This document shows, piece after piece, positions 3,486-29,020 of a stretch of 64,000 nucleotides of DNA. The stretch's first letter is position 1, and each line of letters starts with the position of its first letter. The translations under genes and the position numbers were made by a program. The stretch lies in NCBI GenBank assembly GCA_047495785.1, contig JBLDXI010000015.1, positions 4,836,001-4,900,000 of the forward strand, given 5' to 3'. This DNA is from Lepidodermella squamata (taxonomy: Eukaryota > Animalia > Gastrotricha). The notes below the pieces were generated by a model. It did no database searches. It saw nothing but the letters and a program-made list of their open reading frames with translations, and had not been told where the DNA came from.

Positions 3486-5144
3486 TTAATCGGCAAGCAG
3501 CTCATCATCACTGCTATCAACATCGAGCTCTTCATCAATCGCATAAATCGTATGCGGGTGATAGACAGGCCGGTTGTTGTTGCAGGTAGCTGCTCGGTAG
3601 CAACCGGACTTGCGACCTCTCGAAATCGGGTGCCCAATGACCAGCTTCGAACGCTGCGCCTTTCTAACGGCACCCAGGCGGCAAATAATGGTAACAACAA
3701 AGGCTAGCATGAGAACAGCTCCGAAGAACAACAGAGTAGCGGCGAGTAGAGGTCGTGAAGATCGATCAACTCCAACCATGTCTGAGATCATTTTTTCAAT
3801 ATCATCCTCGGGGGACTCGTACAAGAAGGACGGCCATTCCTCGGGCGGGTTTTTCAACGCCTGCCGCAGCACTTCTTGCGTTTCACGCCGCGTGCAATCG
3901 GCATCGGGGTGCGGATCTACCGACCACATGGCGCAAATCAAGCAGTACACCTGGGTGTTGTTGAATGGTTGAATGTTAACTCCGTCGGCGAATGACGGGC
4001 CAACGCCCAAGAAAGTCGGGTACATGTTAGCGTAGTGATTGTCGTAGCCATGATTGCCCCACGAAGACACCCCAACAGGCCTTCGCCGCAATTCATGCGA
4101 TCGCTTATCATTAACAACAATTTCGGTCAAAGGTTGCTTGCCCTCAGGGGTACTCCACGATAAATAATAGCCGTCGTCCAAGAAGTAAACCAGGTCGAAA
4201 ATTCGGCGGTTATGGCTGAAATGTTCCGAAGCCGGGGCAGCCTCCCATTTGTGGTAAACTCGCATGTTGTTAGCCAGGCTCAAATTTTGAAAAACTGCGT
4301 TTTCGTAACCCTGCTTGACATCGATCGTTGCATCGTAAACTGTGATAACCGAGGTATCGACGAACATTGGTAGATAAATAACTTTATTCGAATCGACTTC
4401 GCTCATTCCGTGATCAGCTGTAATGATAATGCTAGTATCATCTGAAAGACCTGCCTTCTTCAGCGAGGTTAACAAATAGCCAATGACCTGATCGATCCGT
4501 TTAATGGCGGTGACGATCTGAGGCGAATTCGGCCCGTAAGAATGGCCTACATTGTCCAGCTCTTCGAAGTACAAAATTCCGAGAGAATAGTCGTCTTGAA
4601 CTAATTTCGGAATCAGCATATCAATACGGTCTTCATACGCGACCGAACCATTCCACGGAACGTAGTAATCAGCTGCCTGGCCTTTGTAGTAGAAACTGGC
4701 GAAAGGCCACATTATGACTGCAGATTTTCCGACATTTTGCCGGGACAGAGTTACCCAAATCGGTTCCGCCGAATCATTCATCCAGCGGGTGTCCTTCACA
4801 AAATTACCATCGTCGTAATTTTGCTCGGTTCCGTTGATTTCCGCCCACGCTGAGAAGCTTTCCTTCAACACCGGGTCATACATGTCGTTGCCGATCATGC
4901 CGTGATCGTCGTTGAACCGGCCCGTTGCCAAGGTTACGTGGTTTGGTATCGTGATGGTCGTGTACTGGTTTCGGATTCCTTTGTAAGCGAACGTGCCTTT
5001 AGCCTTTAGAGCTTGCAAATTCGGGGTCGGGTGAAGCATCATGTAGTCCCAACGAAACGCGTCGCATGAGATTAGAATAGTTTTCATACGACCTTGCGCA
5101 GCGCAAACCGTCGAAAGAAAGGCAACGACGAGTAAAAGCTTCAT
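3486..5144 (-). CDS. Ectonucleotide pyrophosphatase/phosphodiesterase (ENPP4/5/6-like), type I membrane protein, intronless
   Basis: Signal peptide MKLLLVVAFLSTVCAA (ATG 5144), SCDAFRWDY, catalytic TITIPNH, ELDNVGH, ITADHGM, GNHGYDN, then a TM helix and an acidic tail. Confidence 0.92.
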   Translation of the reverse strand: MKLLLVVAFLSTVCAAQGRMKTILISCDAFRWDYMMLHPTPNLQALKAKGTFAYKGIRNQYTTITIPNHVTLATGRFNDDHGMIGNDMYDPVLKESFSAWAEINGTEQNYDDGNFVKDTRWMNDSAEPIWVTLSRQNVGKSAVIMWPFASFYYKGQAADYYVPWNGSVAYEDRIDMLIPKLVQDDYSLGILYFEELDNVGHSYGPNSPQIVTAIKRIDQVIGYLLTSLKKAGLSDDTSIIITADHGMSEVDSNKVIYLPMFVDTSVITVYDATIDVKQGYENAVFQNLSLANNMRVYHKWEAAPASEHFSHNRRIFDLVYFLDDGYYLSWSTPEGKQPLTEIVVNDKRSHELRRRPVGVSSWGNHGYDNHYANMYPTFLGVGPSFADGVNIQPFNNTQVYCLICAMWSVDPHPDADCTRRETQEVLRQALKNPPEEWPSFLYESPEDDIEKMISDMVGVDRSSRPLLAATLLFFGAVLMLAFVVTIICRLGAVRKAQRSKLVIGHPISRGRKSGCYRAATCNNNRPVYHPHTIYAIDEELDVDSSDDELLAD

Positions 5145-5704
5145 TTTTACCAACTAGATTTAACAATAGGCTGAATTTAATTGCTGCAAAATTTCACAGG
5201 CAAGCAAGCGATTCAGGGCGGGAAAATGTAGGCCGAAAATTCCACTCGAGAAAAAACGTCCAATGAATCGGCAGATAAGGCGCGCAGGGCAAGCAGTCCG
5301 ATAAGCTCAGGGCGTGTAAACATCTCCATTTCGATGAATTTATCAGCCAGCTTGAAAAATAACAAGATAACACGGGAAATTCTAGAAAACAAAAAGAAGA
5401 CACAATTACACAACGAACTTTATTGTTTAAAATAGGACAGTTGATGCACGAAGGACGCGGATGTAACCGGTAAAACATTAAATTCCACATGTAGCAAACG
5501 AGTTATTTTTACCCAAATAGGTTCAGATTGCATCACAAAAAAAGAAAAGAAACAGATTCATTAAATTTCCATCAGCATCGTGTGAAACTTCCGCAAATTG
5601 TAGCAGTTTACAACATATAAGCGCATACAACCAAGGAATTCGCCGAATAAAATGAGTGAATGTGTCCATAAAATTAAGATCACAGAAATAGAATTGGTAC
5701 CAAA

Positions 5705-7327
5705 TTAGTTGACACACGAATCATCGTCGTCGAAATTGCCGCTTTCTTCGTTGACCTTAGCAAGAAGAGGGTCTGGCTTGTGGCATCCCATACGGTACCT
5801 TGGTTTCGGGCGATTGCCGTTAACCATCTGACGTCTAGCCTTGCGAAACATAGCGATTCCACACATGGCGACAATGATGCTCAAACACATGAACAAAGCG
5901 CCCAAGGAAATAAGGAACACGGCCAGGAGAACGCTGTGCTCACGATTAGGATAGCCAAAGTATTCAAGAATGTACTCGCACGAAGATTTGCGCGGCCAGT
6001 CAGTCGGCGGGTCTGTCAAAACTTGGTGCATAACATGGGGTGTTTCATCGTTACCACACTCAGCAAGGGGATGCGGTTGCACACGGTTAATGGCGCAAAT
6101 CAAACAGTAGATTTGCGTGTTATTGAACGGCCTGACCTCAACACCCTTGTGAATCGAAGGCCCAGCGGCGATGAAAACCGGCCACATGGTTTCGTAGCGA
6201 TTGTCATAACCATGACTGCCCCAAACAGAGCTTTTCAATGGCTCTTGTTCTGAACGACGATCATTTATCTCAACTTTGGCATCGCCGACAACCGGCTTTT
6301 TGTCTTTGGGGTAGCTCCACGACAAATAATAGCCTTGGTCGAGGAAGTAAACGATGTCGAAGATACGGCGATTGTGGCTAAAATGCTCCATTGCGGGTAG
6401 GGCTTCGTACTTTCTGAAAATTCGCAGGTTCGGGGCTCGGCTCAAATTGGCGTAAACTTCGTCGACAAATCCCGGCTTCACCCATATATGCTGGTCGTAA
6501 ACCGTGATTTTAGACGTATCAACGTAAAGCGGCAAATAGACGGCGTTCTCCGACTTGATTTCAAGCATTCCGTGATCAGCTGTTATGATAATGTCGATGT
6601 TCTCGGGCCACATGCCGGCGGATGACAGGGTTGACAAGAGGTAGCCAATGACGTCATCGATTCTATAAATTGCTTGAACAATTTGCGGCGAGTTTGGGCC
6701 GTAAGCATGACCTACATTGTCCAGCTCTTCAAAGTACAACACGCCAAGAGTGTAATCGGGTTGGCGCAATTGCGAAACCAGCAAGTCGACTCTTCGCTCG
6801 TAAGTAACCGAGCCATTCCAGGGGATCACGAAATCAGCAGAGGCGTCATTGTACTTGTACGTAGAGAAGGGCCACATCACAACAGCGGATTTGCCAGCAT
6901 TTTGACGTGCAAGCGTGACCCAGATCGGTTCAGCCGTATTGTTCATCCAGCGTGTGTCTTTGTCGTAATTGCCATCGTCGTAATTTACCTCGGATCCATT
7001 GATGTTTGCCCAAGCGGTAAATGATTCGTTCAACACAGAATCCCACATATCATTGCCAACGATACCGTGGTCATCGACATTACGACCAGTAGCTAAGGAG
7101 ACGTGATTTGGGAGAGTTATCGTCGTGTATTGATTGCGAATCCCCCATTTAGCATAAGCACCTTTAGAAATCAAATAGCCGATGTTTGGAGTTGGCTTGC
7201 CCAGTACTTGCATGTAATCCCAGCGAAAAGCATCACATGATATTAGCAGTGTCTTTTTCGATCCAGCCAGCACCATGGAGAAAAGAACGCAGCATAATAT
7301 ACAGACTCTGATCACCGGAGAAACCAT
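5705..7327 (-). CDS. Second ENPP4/5/6-like ectonucleotidase, tandem paralogue, intronless
   Basis: Signal peptide from ATG 7327 (MVSPVIRVCILCCVLFSMVLA), SCDAFRWDY, TITLPNH, ELDNVGH, ITADHGM, GSHGYDN and a TM helix. Colinear with the neighbouring copy. Confidence 0.92.
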   Translation of the reverse strand: MVSPVIRVCILCCVLFSMVLAGSKKTLLISCDAFRWDYMQVLGKPTPNIGYLISKGAYAKWGIRNQYTTITLPNHVSLATGRNVDDHGIVGNDMWDSVLNESFTAWANINGSEVNYDDGNYDKDTRWMNNTAEPIWVTLARQNAGKSAVVMWPFSTYKYNDASADFVIPWNGSVTYERRVDLLVSQLRQPDYTLGVLYFEELDNVGHAYGPNSPQIVQAIYRIDDVIGYLLSTLSSAGMWPENIDIIITADHGMLEIKSENAVYLPLYVDTSKITVYDQHIWVKPGFVDEVYANLSRAPNLRIFRKYEALPAMEHFSHNRRIFDIVYFLDQGYYLSWSYPKDKKPVVGDAKVEINDRRSEQEPLKSSVWGSHGYDNRYETMWPVFIAAGPSIHKGVEVRPFNNTQIYCLICAINRVQPHPLAECGNDETPHVMHQVLTDPPTDWPRKSSCEYILEYFGYPNREHSVLLAVFLISLGALFMCLSIIVAMCGIAMFRKARRQMVNGNRPKPRYRMGCHKPDPLLAKVNEESGNFDDDDSCVN

Positions 7328-8542
7328 CTCACAACTTATTAAGAAACTAAAGAAAAGTTTGAGAACCGATAAATACAAGTCTGTCAATAGATTCACGACT
7401 TGAGGTAGCAGTAATGCCTAATTCCCAATACAAATGCGGTATGCGGTAAATACCAAAAAATTATGGGAGTATTCCACCTCTATACTCTTTATATTCTACT
7501 CTTAAGAAAAACTGTAAAAAGCAGTAGATACCATGTATCTTCGATCTTCGCAATTCGCAATCCAAATCGGGATGAAGTTGAGGACAATAACCATAGGATG
7601 GAATAAATGGCGGGATTTGAAGACAATTTTGCTATCCTGCTATCGTGCTAACAAAAACTTCTGCTGAAAACTGAAAGTTCTGACGATAAATCCAGGATCT
7701 AAAACTCTCAACCTTTGACCTGGTTGATCGTAGAAATATATGTCAGCTTTTTTACAAAAATTACAATTTCAAATTATTTATTAAAATGCAAGAAATGGTT
7801 GAAATAAAAATTTAATATTAATTTTTGTCGTACGTCCTTGCTGCGTCATTTCGGTGAAAAAGTCCGCGATGCGCGAGGTGCGATCTCTTAACCTCGGCCT
7901 GTGATCCGTGATTTGCATGTTATTAGTAAAAATGTTATTCTTGTTACACCACTGAAGATGATCATATTCTTTTGAGAGGAACACTGCGCGAGTAATTCCG
8001 GCCTGCTGGCTCTGGCAAACTAGTCGCAGGTCGTTAGGGAAAATTCTTTTTGCATTAAATTTCGCCTGAATCTTAGGCGTACATGGCCTTTCATGGAAAC
8101 GAAGATTACCTAAATTGTAAGTGGCAACCTTAACATCGCTGACTCGTAGAATATGCCTGACGTTTTGCTGCGGTTGAAAGAAGCGAGCTTTGAAGAAGAT
8201 TAGGATTATGAATTAGGATTATGAATCAGCGCGGTTTATAGCCGAAACGCCGATTACTTTATTGTTATATTTTTCCGCTACAGTTACTGTTCTCCTGATT
8301 CGAGAGCTACTTCTTAGAAGTTCGAAAGCATTCGATATTTGATAGCTGTGAACCATCAAGGTGTTCCATTTCCCTTGTTTTTCGGTCTTAAGTTGATCCC
8401 AATCCCAAAAAGCCGAAACGCTACGCTGACTGCTGTCATCTTGCTTCAAGCATAAGCAAGACCAAAATAACTTCAAAGACTAAGGGCAGAATGAGTGTGA
8501 TATCTGCGCAGAACATATCGACACCTATTTATTCGTCATTGG

Positions 8543-17170: not shown

Positions 17171-17485
17171 AACAATAGTCTCAATGTACATAGCATAGAA
17201 TTTTTAGCCCACGGCAAATTTATACAGTAGTTGCATATTTTTAGCTTTACATTGATATATTTTTCATGTTACTCTTTATAGCATTCAATGTTTGTGTTCA
17301 ATTATATTCCCGCCGCCACTGCTGGACCATATTATTTTTTGTAATTTTATCTGCGATAACAAGATGAATAAAATTGTGCCACCTTAATGTTTGCTTTTTC
17401 ACGAGCCAACTCCGCAAACGGTCGACATCCCCTCCGCATCATTCCTGGGAATTTCATCTTCTTCGTCTGTCGACTAAAAATTAAG

Positions 17486-19069
17486 ATGTGTTCGACTTAC
17501 TTTCTTGGGCTTTTATTAGCCGTAGCTGCCGTTAGTCATGCGTCACCCACAAATGAGCCATCGCCCGATGCAGATCGCCTCCGCGAAGACACGGGTGGAT
17601 TCTGTGGTCGCGACCTTTCAACCCTCAAGCAGCTGATCATGGTGCTTCGCCACGGCGATACTACTCCGATCGGAACATTCCCAACCGACATTCATCAGGA
17701 GAATACTTGGCAGACAGGGTTCGATCAACTCACTCGCCGTGGAGTAGAACGTTCATTCGAGCTTGGCGAATGGACCCGTTCATGCTACGGCAAGTCATTC
17801 CTCAACAAATTCGCCCACTCGAAGAACCTGAACGCGCGCAGTTCGGATACCGATAAAACTCTAATGAGCACCCAAGCTTTCCTAGCTGGAGCGTACCCTC
17901 CATTGACAACATTTCAAGTCGGTTATCAAGTAAGGTAACGATTGCTTGGAAGGCAACAATGTTCAAAATGCATTTTTAGGCATGGGGTGATACGAGAGGA
18001 AGTGCACTTGGCTCCCTTTGGCAACCGATTCCAGTCCACACTGTTGACGCTTATCTTGACCAATTGTTGCTTGGCCATAAGCATTGCCCACGTTATGAAG
18101 AAGTCATCCAGGACATCAACAACTCTTCAAAGACCTTGCAGATACTACAACATGACATTGAATGGCTTGGAATGTTAGCTGCGAAATCTGGTCTGACGGT
18201 CAACAACGGCGATTTAATGGTTTGACAACTTGTCATGAGTTTGCCTGTTCCTTTTCAAACAAATTTGTTCAGGAGTTGGTTTTGAAGATTCAAGAGATAG
18301 TTCTGGCTCAAGTTGAGAATGGACGAACCCCAGTTTCATGGCTGGCCGATGAGAGGTTGCTAGAAAAGCTGGCTTTCTATCGGGATCTTGCTGTCAATCT
18401 CTACGCAAATCATCCTGAAATTGCGAGAATTGCCAGTGGATCGCTTCTTACTGAAATAATGGGAATTCTGGCGTCTCGAGCGGCGCAGGCCTCGCAGTTC
18501 GAACATATCGTCTATTGCACTCATGACACTGTGATCGAAGGTCTACTTGCAAGTCTAGGCGTGCTTAGATCCCTCAACAACAGAAAACCACCTTATTCGG
18601 CTGCAATAATCTTAGAACTTCATCAATTGGACAAGGTGAGGAGGGTACATTTTAAACTGTGTTCTCAACTCTATGCAATGTTTTTCAGAACTACGCGATT
18701 TCGGCTTACTACCGTAACTCTAGCGTTTCAGAGCCGATACAGTTGGAAATTGCAGGCTGCGATAGTGCTCAAGTTGGATGCATGTTGAATGACTTCATGC
18801 AGGCAATGTCATGTAAGGCAGCTCGATCCCACGCCGACGACTGTGTGTCTAGAATACCAGTAACTACTACGGCGAAACCGAAACCGACATCTACCACGGA
18901 ATCTACCACCACGACGGTGGCACCAACTACCACAACAACAGCAACAACTACTACAGAGATTACCACCCCTACGACGCCCGCAGTTGAGACTTCAACTCGT
19001 TGCGTTAAAAGAGCTCCGCATGCCATGTTCGCTGTTCCGAGGAGGCTGGGGAAACACATGATTCCCTAA
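17486..19069 (+). CDS. Secreted histidine acid phosphatase (branch 2, ACP2/ACPP-like) with Thr-rich tail and a variant catalytic motif
   Basis: Signal peptide MCSTYFLGLLLAVAAVSHA, RHGDTTP, QLTRRG, SSDTDKTLMS, WQPIPVHT, CPRY, THDT, PPYSAAIILELH; three short introns. Confidence 0.88.
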
Positions 19070-19626
19070 AACTTGGAAGGTTTTCAACAATTTTGTTGAG
19101 ACTATGAAACATTGCTCAAGTTGTACAAATGCGCCACTGCTTATGAAATAAAACCACCGTAATTATGATTAAAACGTTGAATAAGAAAGGCTATCTAGTA
19201 TTAGGGAAGTTGGGGAAGCATTTTGCTAGTTTTAAAAACACTAAGGCAAATTGCAAAGGGTCCAATCTTGGATTTTCCCAATTTCATGTTGGCTGAAAAA
19301 ATGATTTTAATGAATAAAGCTGCTTGAAGCAATAAAGATTAGAGGGCCCGCTTCAGTATATGTTTCAGCAGATTACAAGGGTATTATTTTTCCACTTTAC
19401 CTAACCAAATAAAATTCACGCATGAAATGAAGCGCGCATACATGTGACTATATAGTCCATCCTTGAGAAAACAATAGACTTGCTTCGAATTTTGAAGGGC
19501 TGGCCGTCGTCGACGAAATTATTAATCCCGTTCTTGAGCCGACTGAACATAAAATGCCGTGGAGAAATCTGTTGGGGTGTGTTCATATTATTATTCTGTT
19601 ATAGCAGATAAATCTTTGTGAGAAAA

Positions 19627-20127
19627 ATGACTCAAGCTGTTATTGTGAACGCAGATCCCAATGCCGACGCTCATCCCTTCGATGACACAATACGTAGGCG
19701 TTCTCGAACGCTATCTGTATCCTGGTCTTCTTCCTGCAGCGAGAATGCCGACGAAGAACGACGTAATTCATCCGGTTTGGCTGACAGAAGACCTCGAGGA
19801 TTGCGGACGGATGAAGCTAGTAAAATTCTACCATCGACTGAGGAACTGCCGTCTCCTCCTGCCAAAAAGCAGCGCAAGGTCAAGATTTGGCAATTCATTA
19901 AGCGGAAGCTAAGCCACAGCAAGTCGTCTGAAACAGCTTTAGTGCAAGCGGGCTCTACTGCAACTTTTGACAAGGCCAACGCGAAGGCGCAAAACAAGGA
20001 TGACAAACCAAGGCCTCAGTCGGATTTCGGCTTTGAGAGCTTGATTTTCGAGGCGTCCGCCAACGGATACGTTGACATATTTCCGAATCATCCGATATCT
20101 GCTCAATCAAAAGCTTTGAAATTCTGA
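19627..20127 (+). CDS. Small disordered protein, GxxDI[YF] family member 1 (166 aa)
   Basis: Single ORF with ATG in AAAATG context; RRRSRTLSVSW, RRNSS, and C-terminal FESLIFEASANGYVDIF shared with five neighbours; AATAAA downstream. Confidence 0.75.
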   Translation: MTQAVIVNADPNADAHPFDDTIRRRSRTLSVSWSSSCSENADEERRNSSGLADRRPRGLRTDEASKILPSTEELPSPPAKKQRKVKIWQFIKRKLSHSKSSETALVQAGSTATFDKANAKAQNKDDKPRPQSDFGFESLIFEASANGYVDIFPNHPISAQSKALKF

Positions 20128-20534
20128 AGAGAAGCGATCCTTTGAGAGCTGATCAGCATCGAAGTTGCTCCAATTTGCCGAAAAAAACATGCCCTACATT
20201 TTATTTGACCATGCGCATTGTGCTATATGCTTTTTTGTTTTATGATCAAAACTGTTGAATAAATTATATCACAAATAGCACGCGTAAGCAGCTCATTAGA
20301 TAACTAAATCCCTAATACCCATAATATAAATATGTTAAGAGATTTTAAATAGCTCTTGTATTGTCACCTTTTAACGTGGGGTAACCATAGCTTCTGATAT
20401 TATCAGACCTGCTTTTTACATGGTTGTAAGGCCATCATCAGCAGTGTGAAATCTGGGATTTAGCAACAATTCATCGCATGTAATTTGCCGCTACCAGCGA
20501 TGCATTTGTAGAAAAACCTGAAATTTTTGTTCTG

Positions 20535-20933
20535 ATGAGCGATTTGAAGCCAGCAGATAATATTATTGAAAATGCAACCCCAACTAATGAGCGAAGTCGA
20601 TCGAACACGCTCACGGTCAGTTGGTGCCCCTCGTTGGACAACAAGGATGCTGAGGTGAGCCGCAAGCCATCGGTGATTTCCAATTATGACACGGAGAGGC
20701 AGCCCAATTTACTGCGTCACTTTCGCAACTTCCTCCGCCGGTTTTTTCAACGACCCAACTCTAGAAAAGCCTCGACGAATACACGCCACAATTCCTCCGC
20801 AAGTCAAGTTGGCGCATTTAATCCACATCAGCGATCGAAAGACTTCGAAAGATTTGTTTCGGATGTTTCAACAAATGGCTACTTGGACATCTTCCCTGAA
20901 TATCAAATTAAACAAACTTACTCGAAAACGTGA
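20535..20933 (+). CDS. Small disordered protein, GxxDI[YF] family member 2 (132 aa)
   Basis: RSRSNTLTVSW aligns with member 1; RKPS, RKAS; C-terminal FERFVSDVSTNGYLDIF. Confidence 0.75.
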   Translation: MSDLKPADNIIENATPTNERSRSNTLTVSWCPSLDNKDAEVSRKPSVISNYDTERQPNLLRHFRNFLRRFFQRPNSRKASTNTRHNSSASQVGAFNPHQRSKDFERFVSDVSTNGYLDIFPEYQIKQTYSKT

Positions 20934-21963
20934 ATGATGAATATGTAAAATTTTACCATGGGTTAAAAAGACGAGTTGACAGTCAGTAATCAACATCGCT
21001 TCCCCGAGATAACAATATTAATTGTGTCCAACAGACAAATGAATACTTACAGGTTTATACCACTTGCCAAATTTCTGATTAATTGAATGAGTACCCTACA
21101 TGAGCAACACAGCGCTTTCCTCTATATTATGGAACAACGGTGGACAAGAAGAAGAGTTTCCAACAAATGCTGGACCTTTTAGTATATCTAGGCTGAAAAA
21201 TATGCTGATCACTCACGTCGGAGAAATTCTCAACATTTACAGGCGCTGTTTTTTATCTGCGATGATTGTAATAATCCTCGCCATATCTTGATCAACACCG
21301 TCACAACCATCACTTGCGAACGACTCAATTCGGGAATTTTTCGAAGGAGTAAAGGAGTGACTTCCGCGGAAATTATAAATTATGGCTATATTTTTGAGCG
21401 CTTTCCTGTAACGATTCGGGCCAAGAAGTGTAAATGGCTCGACTTGACCTCGGGTCATAACAACATAGAGCGTCAGCTGCGCTTTGACACAAGGTCAACC
21501 TGACAGTCTTTTGACGTCTTTTGGAAGGCTGAACGCTGGGGTCAACCCTCCTTCTTAACGTTAAATATCCTGGTGGATTTTGTTAAAAACCTCATAACAC
21601 TCCTGCTAACGCGCGCAAAGGGCCACCTTTTCCTGGTAACAAATATTCTATGCTTTTTTTACCACGTGGAACTTTCTGCGCGTTCAATCTGCTACCTGTA
21701 ACAGTGCACGTTACGAACAAATGCGTCATTGGACAATCCAAGAAACAACTTTCTACAGTGTATGCACGCATTATGCACGCGGTTGACAAGATTAAAACTG
21801 GCGTGAAAGTGAGAGTGCTTGCGTCACTGCCTCGACCCCTGTCATTTGGCCACAGGTATAAAAAGTCGGCAGTTCTGCCGTCGGAACACCACCGTCTTCA
21901 GCTATACTAACAAATTTTCCTTGATTAATATTCACTGAGTTTACTTCAAACTTCAAACAAACA

Positions 21964-22629
21964 ATGCTGCCCCGTCGCAATATGGTCAAGTTCACGCTGG
22001 GTAAAATCGACCCCGAGATCGCGAAAGCAAATGAAATCATCGTGCCACCCGACTCGAAACCTACCGCAATGCCTATCAAATCAATTTTGAAGAAGGAGAA
22101 ATCCCCGGCCCAGAAGTTGCCAACACCGCTGGCAGCGTCTCTTGGCAAACAAAGCTGCCAGGCTGATTTCATGGCCCATAGGTCGGCTTTCAACATATCT
22201 GCGTCGCCAGGCAGTAAGGCTCATTGACTAGTGCGGTTACCGGGTGACGTTTCCCAGCCGGCTTCGGTCGATCGCTGGGCGTCATCCGGGTCTTCAAGCA
22301 GCGCTGTTGATAGTGACCGGAGTCCGCTGATTGAGACAGCAGATGATACACCGAAGCACTCTTTCGGACCATTGGAACCCAAGTCGCTAAACAGGCTGCT
22401 ATCCAAGTGCGAACGAAACTTGGCAAAATTGCTGAAGAAACCGTTCGGCGCGATGACACGAAGAAACGAATACAGCGAAATTGGCGGAACTGCGAAAGCT
22501 AGCCAAGCATCGAAAAGGTGCGCCAAAGCGAAAGGAATAAGGTCTTGCGCCGAAATGCCGCAAGATCTGAAATTCGAGCGGCTTATACGAGAAGCTACCA
22601 CACGGGGCTATGTTGACATTTATGCTTGA
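21964..22629 (+). CDS. GxxDI[YF] family member 3: 87-aa ORF plus in-frame extension across TGA 22225-22227 (221 aa if read through)
   Basis: TATAAAA near 21857 and ATG in ACAATG context. ORFs 21964-22227 and 22231-22629 are in the same frame, separated by TGA CTA. The extension ends FERLIREATTRGYVDIYA. Confidence 0.62.
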
Positions 22630-23114
22630 CTCTAAGATGATAACCATCATTTATTTGATAGCTATAATAAGCCTTACATTTTTTTCTCAGTTTGATTATA
22701 TATCAGTATTATTACTTGGTTTAATCTCACGAAATTCAATGTTAATTTTAGGAATGTCCTTTATCAAGTTCTCTCAGCTTCGAATAAAGTAATAATATAT
22801 TTTAAATGCGTTACATTTCTGACTTTTTGTAAATTATTTCGCAATTTTGCGTAATAAAAGCAATGTTTACTGCGATATGAGCGTTATTATAAGTAAATGG
22901 AAGGTGCTTTCTCTAGAGTGCGTACTGAACAAAGAGGTGTTTATATGGTTTTTTAGCCACGTGTTGTTTTGCACTCAGGAGCATTATATAATTTCATTTC
23001 GTGTCTTCTTATCATTTGCGTTTTGTTCCACACCTACTTCCATTCAAATATAGGCTATTAGACTTCGATCGCCCACTTTTAACAGAACAGCTTCAACTGC
23101 AAACAAACAAAAAC

Positions 23115-23531
23115 ATGGAGATGAAACCCTTGAAAAGATCGCATTCGTCATCAGCATCGGATCGAGGTATGGAGTCTTCCTCTTCAGATGCAGCAAAGGA
23201 TCGTCAGCAAACTGATAAATCTTCGAAATCGTCGTCTTCAAAGACAGCGCCTGATCACCATCAATCGGTCGATTACAGCCACCTTCCATCTTTGAACACA
23301 AATGCCTTCAAAATTGAGTACAGGAATTATTATCGCAAATATTCTCTGCCGACAATTCCAAGTTACGGTGAGCTGCAAGACCTCGAACGTGATAAGCAGA
23401 TGGCTGACGACGAAATTTCAACACGGCCTCGATGCCATACTATTCACACGGAAACCTTCGATGAAACGTACAAGAAAACACTGCAGAGTGCTACAAAAAG
23501 TGGACATGTTGACATTTACTCCATGTTTTGA
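23115..23531 (+). CDS. Small disordered protein, GxxDI[YF] family member 4 (138 aa)
   Basis: ATG in AAACATGG context; Ser-rich, KRSHS, RKYS, RPRCHT; C-terminal YKKTLQSATKSGHVDIYSMF; AATAAA downstream. Confidence 0.75.
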   Translation: MEMKPLKRSHSSSASDRGMESSSSDAAKDRQQTDKSSKSSSSKTAPDHHQSVDYSHLPSLNTNAFKIEYRNYYRKYSLPTIPSYGELQDLERDKQMADDEISTRPRCHTIHTETFDETYKKTLQSATKSGHVDIYSMF

Positions 23532-23864
23532 TATTTTTGAACCTTTCTCTTACGCAGATAGTGCATCAACTACCTGAGATAATCATCTATTATTACCTCA
23601 GGCGACATTTTTTGCATTCACATTGACGATTAATTGATGTGTTATTTATAAATAAGTTTTTAATAAAAATAAAAACCACCATTTTGCGTCATCACTCCAC
23701 AATGGGCGGCACTGCAGTGCATTTAACGTGGGGTTGCGCTTGACTGCGTTAAGAGGTTGAACGGGCTATACTGTACACAGGAGTTTCTCGTCGAGTAACT
23801 TTTCATATGTTGTGACTCGATTATTTTTTGGCGTTAAAGCATATTAATCCGGCGTTTCAGGCGA

Positions 23865-24206
23865 ATGGATAGCAAAGACGAAAAGACTACTCCACAGCCA
23901 GCTCCGATTGCCGCGAGCTTTCCCAATGCGGATGGGTACCAACAGACTATTCGACGCGTGAGCAAACTTGGCCGCAGCGATCTCGCCGATTTGAAGAAAT
24001 CAGCAAGCTGCTCTGATGCAGCCTATACGCAATTTCACAGGCAAGTGTCGACGACTGGCAGGGCCGACATAGCGGCCGAACTATCAAGTCGTCGCTTCAG
24101 TGATAGACCGAAAAAAGTACCGAGCTCCAAACCTCCGTCATTCGATGGCTTCCTCGACCGCGCGAAGAAAACTGGAAATTCAGACATTTACGCAATTCAC
24201 AAGTAG
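23865..24206 (+). CDS. Small disordered protein, GxxDI[YF] family member 5 (113 aa), with two motif copies
   Basis: RRVS, RQVS, RRFS; internal YTQFHRQVSTTGRADIA and terminal FDGFLDRAKKTGNSDIYAIHK; AATAAA downstream. Confidence 0.75.
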   Translation: MDSKDEKTTPQPAPIAASFPNADGYQQTIRRVSKLGRSDLADLKKSASCSDAAYTQFHRQVSTTGRADIAAELSSRRFSDRPKKVPSSKPPSFDGFLDRAKKTGNSDIYAIHK

Positions 24207-24518
24207 AAATGGTTCATTTATTTGCGTTTTTCTGCTGTCCTTGCTGTCTGTGAATTGGTAATAAAAGTTTTTCAAGTGCTGAATAATCTGTTTACGATGT
24301 TAAAAATAGCTAAAACACGTGATGATCCAATTAGGCCGTTAGCAGTACACAAGTTGGAAACCGAAAACTTGGCCGCTATGAATAATTAGTAAATGGCTTG
24401 AACAGCGCAGCACGACTTTCTGCATATAAGCTCAAATTTAGCCCAGATCAGTTGAACTTGTAATTATTTTTTAACACGTGAACAATCGTTCCCAGACTGC
24501 AATATAACTTCGAAGTTT

Positions 24519-24994
24519 ATGTCATCACCTGGTACGAACAAAGCCGAAACTACAGAGGCGAAAATTCCCGACAAAAAGAAAACTGGCAACCTGGTTATTC
24601 CTAATAGGCAGCGATCCACATCGCTTGCCGTCGGTGACACTAGTTATCAGTCGGTGGTCAAATTTTCCAAGGAAGTTGACCAGGTAAGAAATGATATATA
24701 AGCTTGGGAATATTTTTGACCTCGTACATTTTTTATATGAAGCTGATGGAACGTAAAAAGAACGAACTCCGAAGAGATTCTGTTGTCAGCACCAGCTCTA
24801 TTCAGTCGATAAGTCGCGATACGGTTGATGCTCGATACCGCCGGACGTCAATTGTTGCGCTAATGAACGGCAATTCGGACATTCGCCATTCGGTAGCAAA
24901 CATTGAGCCGACTTTGGTCGATTTTCAATACGAGAAGGCCATCAAGAAGGCCAAGGACATTGGGCATACAGACATCTACGCTATGGGCTATTGA
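24519..24994 (+). CDS. Small disordered protein, GxxDI[YF] family member 6 (138 aa, 2 exons)
   Basis: Phase-0 intron 24684-24742 (CAG|GTAAGA...TGAAG|CTG) joins the two ORFs in frame; RQRSTS, RRDS, RRTS; C-terminal YEKAIKKAKDIGHTDIYAMGY. Confidence 0.75.
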
Positions 24995-25463
24995 CAAGAG
25001 ATTGCCATTTTATTATTATTTTTTTTATGATATAGCTAATCACAGTTTTACTGACTAGTTATGATACCCGAATTTTGAGACATGCTCGGTGAATTAACAA
25101 AATAAAATTCCTGATTTTTTCTTAAAAAAAGGTTCTCATCTTACCATACTAAAAGGCGAAGCACAGGGTCAAAGGGATAAGAATTCGAAGGTTTGGGTGA
25201 AACACGCTTCGACTGTCACAGCACGCGACAGGCACGCGCCCAGACTCAGCTGAGAAATAATACGATTTGAAATTTCGAGGCTACAAAGCCTGTTTCAACT
25301 ATTATTCCCCCTCGGCCCATCATTTCACATTGGATACTGCTAATTTTCTGAATTTTCGATAACTGGTTCAAATGTCTTTTTTTTATTTAATATCAGTTGT
25401 TCCCTTTCGGGCAGCAGATTTTTAGGAATAGAAAATTAAAGTAAGACATAAATAATCCTCGAA

Positions 25464-27023
25464 ATGGCAGGCAGATCTCAACCAGCGACCTGTAGATTAT
25501 TACCTGTTGTCATCATGTGCATCCTACTAAGCATTTCATCAGCACAAGAGGCAAGCGATCCAAACGACGAAGATGGTAAAGATGACGAAGAACCGGATGA
25601 ATTGGAGTTTTGCAGTCGAGATATGTCTACTCTCGAGCAGCTCATCATGGTTTTCCGGCATGGCGACCGAACTCCGGAGGACATCTTCCCAACAGACATC
25701 CACAAAGAGGACGCATGGCCGCTTGGTTATGGCCAGTTGACTGAGCGGGGCATTTTGCGGTCTTACGAACTTGGCCAGTGGTCAAGGTCGTGCTACAAGT
25801 CGCATCTCAGCGATATATTAACAACACGGCGAACGTATGTTAGGAGTTCAGATTATGATCGAACACTAATGAGCATCAAAGCTCATCTTGCTGGCGCTTA
25901 TCCTCAGGTATGACTAGAACCGAATTCATAAAAACCTTGATTTCAGGAATTATTTTCATAGATTTTAGGAGGGGATTTCCCGATTCACACAGTACCTGTT
26001 AAATCTGACAGGCTGTTACGCGGTCACAAAAACTGCCCTCGGTTTTCGGAACTCGGCGAAGAAATTGACTCGTCGGAACGTGCCCGCCGCGTGATAGAGG
26101 CCGATATGGATTTCTTAAAAATGATTGCCGAGAAATCAGGTCTTAATTTTAGTAATATTTTGGTGAGTTTCGTATGGTTTTGATTTATACACTGTATTTT
26201 GAAAATTTACGGCCAGAAACCAACTTTATATGTTGCCGACTCTGTGTTGGTCGAGCTTGAGAACAACATGCCTATTGTTGAATGGCTTAACGATGATAAC
26301 CTAATCGATAAGCTGGTGTTCTACAGCGATTTCGCATTCGAATTGTACTACAACAATGCGGAGATGGCAAAACTCGTCGGTGGCCCTTTGTTGCAGGTAA
26401 ATAATTCCTTTAATTTTTCGGTCCTGGACTATTGTTGTTGCAGGAAATTATTAACCGTATGAAAGACCGGGCTGACGATCAGTCAACCTTGGAGCATCTT
26501 CTCTACTCTGGTCACAGCACGGTCATGGGTGGCTTGTTAGGCAGCTTAGGCGCTATGAACAACCTGGAGCCACCTTATGCGGCTGCGGTGATTTTCGAAC
26601 TTCACAAAATCGATAACGTAGGTTTCGTTATTTTTAGCTCAGAATTCCCAAAATCGAACTTCATTTCAGAGCTACATTGTTAAGGTGTACTATCGCAACT
26701 CCTCGGATGAAGATCCTTATCCGTTGGAGATCGACGGCTGCGACAGCCACGAAGATCATGGTTGTACGCTGGATGAATTCGAACAAGCATTGGCGCATCG
26801 CGTATCTACGACACATGATCGCGACTGCGCGCTAAATAATAACGTATCTTTGGATCCATTCGCGAGTAACGCCGAGGATTCGCGAACTGGCGATGCGCGG
26901 TCGTCGTTGACGAACAAGTCATCTGAGATGGGCGATTCTGATCACCTGCAACCTCGCGTCGACTACGTACCCCCCATCGACGTGTCATTCGTCTCCAAAG
27001 CTGAGCCCCAAATCGCCAAGTAG
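25464..27023 (+). CDS. Second secreted histidine acid phosphatase (branch 2), paralogue of 17486-19069
   Basis: Signal peptide, FCSRDMSTLEQLIMVFRHGDRTP, GYGQLTERG, SSDYDRTLMS, FPIHTVP, CPRF, SGHST, PPYAAAVIFELH; short GT-AG introns. Confidence 0.9.
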
Positions 27024-27555
27024 ATTCGCATCTCATGAAATTTTATTTTCTCCATAAAAATCATGCCTGAAAATAATCAATTTCTCGCTGTGAACAAGTT
27101 TGATCTGCTGCCTTCGTTATTACATCGCGCTTCTTAAAAGCCTGTTTCAACCCCATTTGAGGATGTTGTTGTCTCTGCGTTATTCCTGTTGAAATCTCAT
27201 CACACAGAATTCGTTAAAAATGTTATTATTCTATTCAACAGTTGATAAAATACCAGCCGGTATATACGTGTGGAACATTTTTGTATGCAATCCTTAGTTG
27301 GCATGTGATATCATGTGAAATAAAATTATTCGCCTGGATTACAGAAAATAGCCTTTATTTTCATAATAATTATATGAATTTAGCTTCAAATAGCAGTGAA
27401 GAAGACTTGTGGAGCAATCCGGCGTCGGTTTTTTTCAGAGGGCAGTACTTCTTCGAGGTTATTACCGAAAAGCCGAAAAGGTCCTCGACGTTCGATCACA
27501 ACCCCAAAGTTATTATAAGCAGCATAGATTTTTTTCAAGTTTCAGCAGTCAAATT

Positions 27556-29020
27556 TTAGTCAAAATAAAAAAGGTCGCTATTCGGCTTGTTTTCGTCGAT
27601 CTGTGTACCGGCTACAATGGCGCTTGGCCGGTTGAGCTTCGGGTTGATGCTGACGGCGACTCGCCAGAGGCCGCAAATTTCGTAAGCGTCTCGCTGTTGG
27701 TACTGCCGCGCGTCCATAGACTGCCACATCGACAGCAGCTGCAGTTTACCAGCTTCATCATAAATCACCGCAAAAATCTGAAGACGATCATTACCACGAT
27801 CAGCGACAACTAAATTTCCAACCTAAAAAAAATGAGAGAAATTAAAAAAATTGCGGAAATAAATTAGGAAAAAATTACCGGATCGAAAACTAATTCACAA
27901 GGCCCGTTTAAGAAATCGCGTTGAATTGGCCGCTTTTTGTATGATGTGACTATCGCAGCACGGTCAAAGGCTATTTGAGTGACGGATGCGCCGTTTTGGC
28001 AAGCTTCAACGTAGCTCGAAAAGGCCTTGTTGTCGGTCGAGAACACTGAAATCGTGTTGTTGATGAAATCAGACACAGCTACGACGAGCAGCTGATCTTC
28101 GTCGTTGCTGTCGAAAGTTTCTTCATAGCTAGTCGTGCTGGCAGCGGGCGGGCGGCCCATCATCAGACCGGCCATTGATGCCGACGATGTCGAAGACAGT
28201 GTCTTGCGAACATGGGCGGATTTCGACACGAGAAACGACTTTGGCATGACGTGGAAGGCGCAGAAGCGCGGATCAACAGCGTACGAAGCGTCGCCCTCGT
28301 GCGCCCATTCGATGGAGCCGATGAGCCGGGCTGCGATTAAATCATAGCCAGACAACAGCCAGATAGACACGTCTCGGTCGCAGGCACAGGCGTACAACAC
28401 GCGCCGTTTAGCATCAACCGTCAAGCTTAAAAAATAACGGTTTGCCACATCTTTAGCCGACATGACTATTCGATCGAGGTAGGCTGGGGCTTCTTTGGAC
28501 GAGGCCGCTACTGCTGCTCGGCTAACGGTGAATAGCGACTGGTCATCGTAGAGAGCGGCAAGAACGAAATAGAAGCGATCGATGAGCGAGTCGTAGACGG
28601 CGTGGTAGACGCCGAACTTCGAAGTTGATTTATGCACGTCGCCTGGTGGTGGCATAATCCGACCTTCCCATTCCACTTTGCCCCAATCAGAGCTAGAGTA
28701 ACACTGAAAAGCAAGAAAACAACCTGAAAGTTTGCTCACAGAAGAGTAAAATCTTACTGTGACTTTTCCTTCAGTATCGACGACAATAATTCCGTGCTGA
28801 CCGGCTTCCATTATTGCCGCGACTCGTGATGTCAGCTCGGGTTTCCGTCTAGCATTGCTGCCGGTTTTAGCCTTCCGTTGCCAGCGGTGATAGTATTCAC
28901 CGGCGAATAGCCGCCGCCGACTAGAGTCATCTGTCTATAAATCATCGAAATAATGATGGAAATGATTGACTTTTAGATACCAACTTGTTTCAATTTCTGC
29001 TGGACGATTACGTCGGCCAT
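27556..29020 (-). CDS. NHL-repeat (beta-propeller) containing protein, multi-exon
   Basis: ATG 29020 (MADVIVQQKLKQ), intron, long ORF 28811-27864; splicing to the last exon gives LNGPCELVFDP-VGNLVVADRGNDRLQIF, a typical NHL repeat. VAVSDFINNTISVF is a second, degenerate repeat. Confidence 0.6.

Follow-up and report, generated by a model that had tools for sequence, protein, structure and literature searches.

What kind of family do six small, co-oriented genes form when their mostly unalignable products end in the same short motif? This question is raised by positions 19627 to 24994 of a stretch of 64,000 nucleotides (nt) from the gastrotrich Lepidodermella squamata (GenBank assembly GCA_047495785.1, contig JBLDXI010000015.1, positions 4,836,001 to 4,900,000 of the forward strand). 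We call the whole stretch the window, and positions refer to it unless another locus is named. An earlier, sequence-only reading had described an array of small, disordered proteins rich in phosphorylation sites and tied together by an unrecognised C-terminal motif. We find that the array is part of a gene family without detectable relatives elsewhere, comprising six tandem and two dispersed genes. We are highly confident that this is a real, expressed, and selected protein family, and the putative function of its motif can be narrowed by weighing several explanations against each other.

Array genes and transcripts

The coding features of the array, all on the forward strand, are listed below. 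They are based on open reading frames (ORFs) and on transcription data that consist of the contigs of one public run from 2015 (X1), which behaves like complementary DNA (cDNA).

19627-20127, forward strand: member 1 coding sequence, 166 amino acids, single exon, TGA stop (ORF; low-depth cDNA contigs; AATAAA at about 20260)
20535-20933, forward strand: member 2 coding sequence, 132 amino acids, single exon (ORF; cDNA depth very low, about 1.5)
21964-22227, forward strand: member 3 first ORF, 87 amino acids, up to an in-frame TGA (22225-22227) that is followed by CTAG (ORF)
22228-22629, forward strand: member 3 extension, 133 codons in the same frame, holding the motif (cDNA contig across the TGA)
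21961-22875, forward strand: member 3 messenger RNA (mRNA), poly-A at 22875 (deepest cDNA contig cover in the array; A-run as a loose end)
23115-23531, forward strand: member 4 coding sequence, 138 amino acids, single exon (ORF; cDNA contig 23237-23556)
23865-24206, forward strand: member 5 coding sequence, 113 amino acids, poly-A at 24283 (cDNA contig 23821-24283 with an A-run)
24519-24683, forward strand: member 6 exon 1, 55 codons (cDNA joint 24681>24741, GT..AG, cut +2)
24743-24994, forward strand: member 6 exon 2, poly-A near 25130 (cDNA contigs)

Several features of the X1 contigs speak for individual transcripts. A-runs occur at 22875, 24283, and about 25130, and a SMART-type cDNA adaptor is found as a loose end. 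The 59-nt GT..AG intron of member 6 (24684-24742) is absent from the contigs, and the spliced product is in frame and 138 amino acids long. Likewise, X1 depth is zero between genes at 19400-19596, 21370-21960, and 24325-24521, and every gene of the array has its own AATAAA. The poly-A tails, the removed intron, and the zero-depth gaps together indicate that the genes are separate and expressed, which bears out the earlier description of six co-oriented genes. Summed contig depth, a poor measure of expression, ranged from 216 to 1797 per bin over member 3 (21961-22945) and from 0 to 128 in the rest of the window, with bins of 3.6 to 128 (mostly 15 to 66) in members 4 to 6 and of about 1.5 to 18 in members 1 and 2.

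At the DNA level, likeness among the members is almost nil; only members 3 and 4 resemble each other, in their motif codons and in a 16-nt leader. The near absence of DNA similarity suggests that the duplications are old, an age judged solely from the divergence between paralogues of one genome. The leader, AACT[TG]CAAACAAACAA, is found at 21949-21964 (member 3) and 23095-23110 (member 4), where it abuts the start codons. It is 94% identical between the two genes and may represent a common context for the start of translation or transcription.

The motif and its copies in the genome

A six-frame scan of the 64-kb window with the regular expression [FY]x6[ASVG]x3GxxDI[YFA] yielded seven matches, all on the forward strand between 20032 and 24979 and none elsewhere, while 0.015 matches per window are expected by chance (mean of 200 base-shuffled windows). 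All the strings quoted earlier, the six terminal ones and the internal one of member 5, were found unchanged. Another internal copy, not quoted before, occurs in member 6 at residues 87 to 103, with R at the end instead of Y or F. The copies are listed below, with the profile expectation value (E) where one applies to a single copy.

20032-20082, forward strand: motif copy of member 1 (regular expression match; profile E 8e-12)
20844-20894, forward strand: motif copy of member 2, with V at the A/S position (regular expression and profile)
22573-22623, forward strand: motif copy of member 3 (regular expression and profile; constraint given below)
23469-23519, forward strand: motif copy of member 4 (regular expression and profile)
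24024-24074, forward strand: internal motif copy of member 5, ending in DIA (regular expression and profile)
24141-24191, forward strand: terminal motif copy of member 5 (regular expression and profile)
24836-24886, forward strand: internal motif copy of member 6, ending in DIR, with an RxRxxS site inside
24929-24979, forward strand: terminal motif copy of member 6 (regular expression and profile)

The window lies on contig C15 of the genome assembly, which was searched in full (121 Mb) with a profile of 31 positions built on the motif, a check suggested along with the sequence-only reading. All seven window copies were recovered at E values of 1e-10 to 1e-12, together with two new loci outside the window. 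One of these (C55:552383-552463) is a paralogue of member 3 that shares its two-part layout; the other (C3:2676320-2676406, minus strand) is an 83-amino-acid ORF with the motif at its end. The family reaches beyond the six genes of the array and includes these two dispersed genes, with proteins of 83 to 221 amino acids in all. At each of the eight loci the motif lies at the C terminus or at most 17 residues from it. It is present once in members 1 to 4 and at both dispersed loci, and the two copies are separated by 39 residues in member 5 and by 31 residues in member 6.

Two weaker profile matches, on C33 (E 0.19) and C26 (E 0.76), lie in frames that look noncoding and are likely due to chance. 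Divergent to the C3 member (L009:1486-1734, minus strand) lies a 107-amino-acid ORF (L009:2020-2343, forward strand) with the motif-like string F-x6-T-x3-G-x2-D-I-R, which is spaced as in the family motif and preceded by an RKxxS site. This ORF falls below the profile threshold and, to judge from the string, is possibly a further, diverged member of the family.

The anatomy of the motif is well defined. None of the nine aligned copies departs from Gly12, Asp15, or Ile16, and eight of the nine have an aromatic residue at position 17. Positions 1, 4/5, and 8 are hydrophobic and lie together on one face of the helix, and DI[YF] is followed either by a stop within one to four residues (members 3 to 6) or directly by Pro (members 1 and 2). 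Structure prediction was run on two chains, the whole of member 1 and the first member 3 ORF, and both came out mostly disordered, in agreement with the disordered chains of the sequence-only reading. The AlphaFold2 model of member 1, built on the family alignment, had a mean predicted local distance difference test (pLDDT) score of 55 and no tertiary fold. Helices were predicted only at residues 79 to 96 (basic and amphipathic) and 135 to 145, the latter being the first part of the motif. We therefore model the module of 17 residues, provisionally, as a short amphipathic helix followed by Gly, then x-x-Asp-Ile-aromatic, and then the end of the chain or Pro.

Constraint on the motif

The ratio of nonsynonymous to synonymous substitution (dN/dS) between member 3 and its C55 paralogue, another comparison proposed at the outset, was 0.16 in the motif versus 0.66 in the body behind the in-frame stop; the first ORF gave 0.14. 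None of the 34 coding differences between the alleles of two runs falls in a motif copy, the motifs making up about 13% of the coding sequence, and about half of the 34 are synonymous. Among copies, the 17-mers share a mean pairwise identity of 40%. The bodies are mostly unalignable, as had been stated, with some exceptions: even without the motif, similarity persists at the N termini between members 1 and 2 (E 3e-4, against a tiny database) and between members 1 and 5 (E 0.004). As far as these sequence comparisons reach, constraint is stronger on the motif than on the rest of the protein.

The same data bear on the most sceptical explanation, namely, that the ORFs are not functional protein genes but chance ORFs, pseudogenes, or noncoding transcripts. 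Such an origin would agree with the lack of homologues in any database searched, with the very low cDNA depth of members 1 and 2, and with the frameshift in the C55 copy. However, it does not account for seven motif copies where 0.015 are expected, for polyadenylated and spliced transcripts, for dN/dS values of 0.14 to 0.16 on the conserved parts, or for coding indels that are mostly multiples of three. We consider this explanation close to refuted.

An in-frame stop codon in member 3

In member 3, an in-frame TGA-CTAG (22225-22231) divides the first ORF of 87 amino acids from the 133 codons that bear the motif. The range of 113 to 221 amino acids given earlier for the array proteins can be retained on the understanding that member 3 attains 221 only when this TGA is read through. 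A cDNA contig (22093-22418) crosses the TGA unspliced and shows no gap or difference there, so the mRNA retains the stop. The C55 paralogue (L008:851-1563; G000:C55, about 551754-552466) has TGA-CTA at the same codon, in the context UGA-CUAU, and the frame is maintained behind it, with 117 open codons compared with 133 in member 3. Indels between the two genes are mostly multiples of three (+15 and -3 behind the stop, +3 in the first ORF), and the motif is still well conserved in the paralogue. The cDNA-like run X1 holds 0.51 of the words sampled from the C55 locus. No synteny of this locus with the window was found beyond the gene itself, which thus appears as a lone gene duplicate.

The first ORF of member 3 has only two copies genome-wide. 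The sequence of the extension can be aligned to members 1 and 2 in their N-terminal and central blocks. Given this alignment and the match of the leader to that of member 4, the stop seems to have arisen inside a former single ORF of the family type.

Three other accounts of the TGA were rejected. An 18-nt GT..AG "intron" spanning it is ruled out by the unspliced cDNA contig. Incorporation of selenocysteine was dismissed, as no match resembling a selenocysteine insertion sequence (SECIS) element was present in 19400-25300. An internal start behind the stop would have to use the sole ATG there, which is not kept in the C55 paralogue.

The best reading of the sequence pattern is a predicted programmed readthrough of the UGA in member 3. 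The stop context is kept, the downstream ORF is open, constrained, and in frame, and there is no alternative start. Moreover, UGA CUAG has been reported to favour readthrough in mammals (bioRxiv 10.1101/2021.04.18.440353). Compared with programmed readthrough at UGA-CUA(G), member 3 is alike in having UGA-CUAG and a downstream frame that is open, conserved, and equipped with the family motif. It is unlike in that its extension of 133 codons equals a whole family member in length and is not a short tail. Most likely, the leaky UGA-CUA would give rise to two products, one that stops short of the motif and one that gains it by readthrough. Member 3 would then offer, for an animal, a clear comparative example of a functional module placed under the control of a conserved leaky stop.

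Searches for relatives and the resemblance to ankyrin repeats

Pfam gave nothing for any member or piece and no ankyrin family at E values up to 1 (or 5). Word-index searches found no relative of member 1 or of the first ORF of member 3, and a word-index search with the full-length family alignment brought up 2828 candidates, none of them at E up to 1. Likewise, no relative was returned by a search of the ESM Atlas by features or by a search of metagenome contigs with the member 3 extension. The libraries searched held no single-copy relative with a C-terminal motif; they seem not to include the proteins of this genome itself. Relatives in unsequenced sister species are possible. A literature search for the motif strings turned up only the four-residue LDIY motif of FLASH (PMC3884669), which we take to be a coincidence.

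A profile search of 1.84 billion representative proteins retrieved 27 proteins at E up to 1e-3. All of these are long and reach significance through the summing of three to nine weak stretches each, and 19 of the 20 that were checked are ankyrin arrays. The remaining one (P0020, from a public library, 354 amino acids) is an unnamed repeat protein with three repeats of about 37 residues (E 1.8e-4 summed over three stretches). Its repeats contain D-R-F-V-S-S-T-x-M-T-G-R-G-D-I-F, a string close to two copies of the family motif, namely, that of member 2 and the internal one of member 5. When the profile was run against the PDB, the best match was an ankyrin repeat of BARD1 at a nonsignificant E of 0.78, with nothing lower. 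The hhalign program aligned the profile to repeats cut from the profile matches with a probability of 90% over repeat positions 3 to 23, a circular result since these repeats had been picked by the same profile. In the PDB and among the 1.84 billion proteins, the only look-alike of the motif is thus the middle part of the ankyrin repeat.

The nature of this resemblance can be specified. Like the ankyrin repeat (Pfam PF00023 / PF12796), the motif follows the pattern hydrophobic-x-x-A-[AST]-x-x-G-[HYN]-x-D-I, which corresponds to the inner helix and the Gly-His turn, and it fits the ankyrin central consensus A-[AS]-x-x-G-H-x-[DE]-[IV]. Unlike the ankyrin repeat, it lacks TPLH, has aromatic first and last positions, and is followed by the end of the chain. 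The outer helix that comes after the Gly-His turn in ankyrins was not found, AlphaFold2 giving a single helix there (residues 135 to 145 of member 1), and no tandem stack with a 33-residue period was seen in the family members. With the Pfam thresholds, the outer helix, and the 33-residue stack all failing, the family does not belong to the ankyrins. The resemblance may instead be used as a lead on local shape, that is, a helix and then a Gly turn. The motif may still be called unrecognised in the sense that no described family matches it, and the likeness to the ankyrin central segment is what this description had missed.

Conceivably, the module could be a relic or a mimic of a single ankyrin repeat, consisting of the inner helix, the Gly-His turn, and the first part of the outer helix. 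In that case, either an ankyrin-repeat gene would be the ancestor of the family, or a partner would have an ankyrin stack against whose end the half-repeat packs. This would explain why the only profile matches among the 1.84 billion proteins are multi-stretch ones, nearly all of those checked being ankyrin arrays, and why a BARD1 repeat leads the PDB matches and the hhalign probability is high. It would also agree with the spacing of the paired copies in members 5 and 6 (39 and 31 residues), which is near the 33-residue period. Nevertheless, there is no Pfam ankyrin match at E up to 1 and the PDB match is not significant, the library matches depend on sums of weak stretches, and the hhalign value is circular. 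Moreover, neither the outer helix nor TPLH is found, and ankyrins do not feature an aromatic residue at the first and the last position. On balance, an ankyrin origin or mimicry seems quite unlikely to us.

Predicted kinase sites and comparison with known regulators

Basophilic sites are enriched in the family compared with 2000 composition-preserving shuffles. RxRxx[ST] was observed 6 times versus 1.0 expected (a count reached by 1 of the 2000 shuffles), RRx[ST] 6 times versus 1.0 (0 of 2000), and [RK][RK]x[ST] 11 times versus 4.9 (26 of 2000). The RxRxx[ST] sites are spread over four of the six tandem members, and the next residue is V, L, or I in six of six. RxRxx[ST] followed by a hydrophobic residue is the consensus of AGC kinases of the Akt/SGK/RSK type, and RRxS is a site of the PKA/PKG type. 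An N-terminal block, R-x-R-S-x-[ST]-L-x-V, is common to members 1, 2, and 6; in members 1 and 2 the shared stretch reads R-x-R-S-x-T-L-x-V-S-W. Basophilic sites are thus frequent in the family as predicted kinase sites, although not universal.

PKI, inhibitor-1/DARPP-32, ARPP-19/endosulfine, and inhibitor-2 are short, largely unfolded chains with few docking elements and basophilic sites. The likeness of our family to these proteins is one of design only. Pfam detected no match of its members to the PKI, inhibitor-1, endosulfine, or inhibitor-2 families, and the signatures RRNAI (a pseudosubstrate), KIQF plus RRRPTP, and FDSGDY are absent from the translations. BAD and PRAS40 are small, disordered adaptors and Akt substrates in which RxRxx[ST] sites occur alongside a single short motif, helical or linear, for partner binding, and the RxRxx[ST]-hydrophobic sites in four of the six tandem members are reminiscent of this arrangement. 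The BH3 motif (hydrophobic-small-Asp) and the TOS motif (Phe three before Asp) are off register with the family motif, which has its invariant Gly three before Asp. To our knowledge, none of the EF-hand loop, GoLoco, WH2, BH3, TOS, PIF/hydrophobic motif, LIR, and YxxPhi fits in register or key residues. By analogy, then, the family may be viewed as an orphan whose design recalls that of the small docking proteins known to be regulated by phosphorylation.

A role as a PP1 regulator was considered and rejected. The K-S-I-L-K in the first ORF of member 3, which is similar to the SILK of inhibitor-2, is not kept in the C55 paralogue. An R-S-A-F is spaced as in inhibitor-2 but has no strict RVxF fit, and Pfam IPP-2 gave no match.

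A possible docking function

Possibly, the module folds upon binding and clamps a hydrophobic groove on a folded partner, with Gly capping the helix and with Ile and Tyr/Phe providing a second anchor. The variable bodies would carry the basophilic kinase sites, of the Akt/SGK/RSK type in three members and of the PKA/PKG type (RRxS) in others. Since the duplicated members differ in the type of kinase site, we propose that a single docking function may have come under differing kinase inputs. Taken jointly, we infer that the module is a partner-docking element and that the bodies are controlled by kinases, a statement to which we would give slightly less than an even chance. Doubtful, in our judgement, is the more specific version in which a conserved enzyme such as a kinase or phosphatase docks onto the module, as a motif new to science, and in which programmed UGA readthrough tunes how much of the member 3 protein bears it. 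In that version, the leakiness of the stop would serve as a switch between a motif-free and a motif-bearing regulator.

A number of observations weigh against this docking model. Conservation was judged from paralogues and alleles within a single lineage, and X1, the source of the depth figures, is taken to be RNA-derived from its poly-A tails, the splice joint, and the cDNA adaptor and not from any record. Residues 135 to 145 of member 1, although of the highest local confidence in the AlphaFold2 model, score only about 70. The shuffles behind the site counts were mono-residue and left local clustering of Arg and Ser uncontrolled. Furthermore, basophilic sites are lacking at two loci out of eight, those of member 3 and of the C3 copy, so that "phosphosite-rich" does not define the family; the dense sites of the sequence-only reading are upheld as an enrichment over shuffles and are missing from these two proteins. 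Finally, an insertion of 2 nt in the C55 paralogue (an extra AT in GATATCTG) lies directly ahead of the motif, puts it out of frame, and may reflect recent decay or an assembly error.

An alternative to a regulatory handle on a partner enzyme would be a sorting or turnover signal, that is, a C-terminal targeting element or a degron. The position of the motif, at most 17 residues from the C terminus at all eight loci, and its short, hydrophobic-acidic conserved core would suit such a signal, and the readthrough layout of member 3 might equally well switch location or stability. On the other hand, internal copies are also kept in members 5 and 6, and the conserved span includes a helix of 8 to 11 residues, longer than typical terminal degrons. 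We therefore regard a sorting or turnover signal as unlikely.

The disordered nature of the chains also raises the possibility of proteins that act in bulk, as stress-protective or condensate-forming components, with the module driving self-association. The proteins are polar, the two folded chains are mostly disordered by prediction, the genes have expanded in tandem with one member at very high cDNA contig depth, and several other orphan disordered families occur in the same genome. Self-association, however, has found no support; modelling of the last 49 residues of member 1 as a homodimer gave "no answer" (score 0.00), which weighs neither way. The enrichment of particular kinase consensus sites fits regulation better, and a bulk function appears very unlikely to us.

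If the docking model is true, a synthetic 17-mer would be a ready probe for the partner, in an animal lineage that has received little study. It would also follow that tandem duplication can spread one binding function over different kinase inputs. Set against this, disordered families restricted to one lineage are common, with several in this genome, and the present value of the family is that of a well-documented lead and not of a discovery.

Neighbouring genes and haplotypes

The genome run contains two haplotypes at roughly equal depth, with dense clusters of single-nucleotide polymorphisms and in-frame indels at 19908-19976, 21996-22056, and 23055-23129. Two such divergent haplotypes indicate that the sequenced individual or strain is highly heterozygous.

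Pieces of His_Phos_2 (histidine acid phosphatase) genes lie on either side of the array on the same strand, at 17387-19069 and at 25464-27813, and the downstream piece (25464-27813) starts like a signal peptide. The orphan array thus seems to lie within a tandem phosphatase cluster. Further upstream, on the minus strand at 3486-7396, are two tandem, intron-poor genes for phosphodiesterases of the ENPP type, with products of about 555 amino acids each (Pfam Phosphodiest, E 1e-65).

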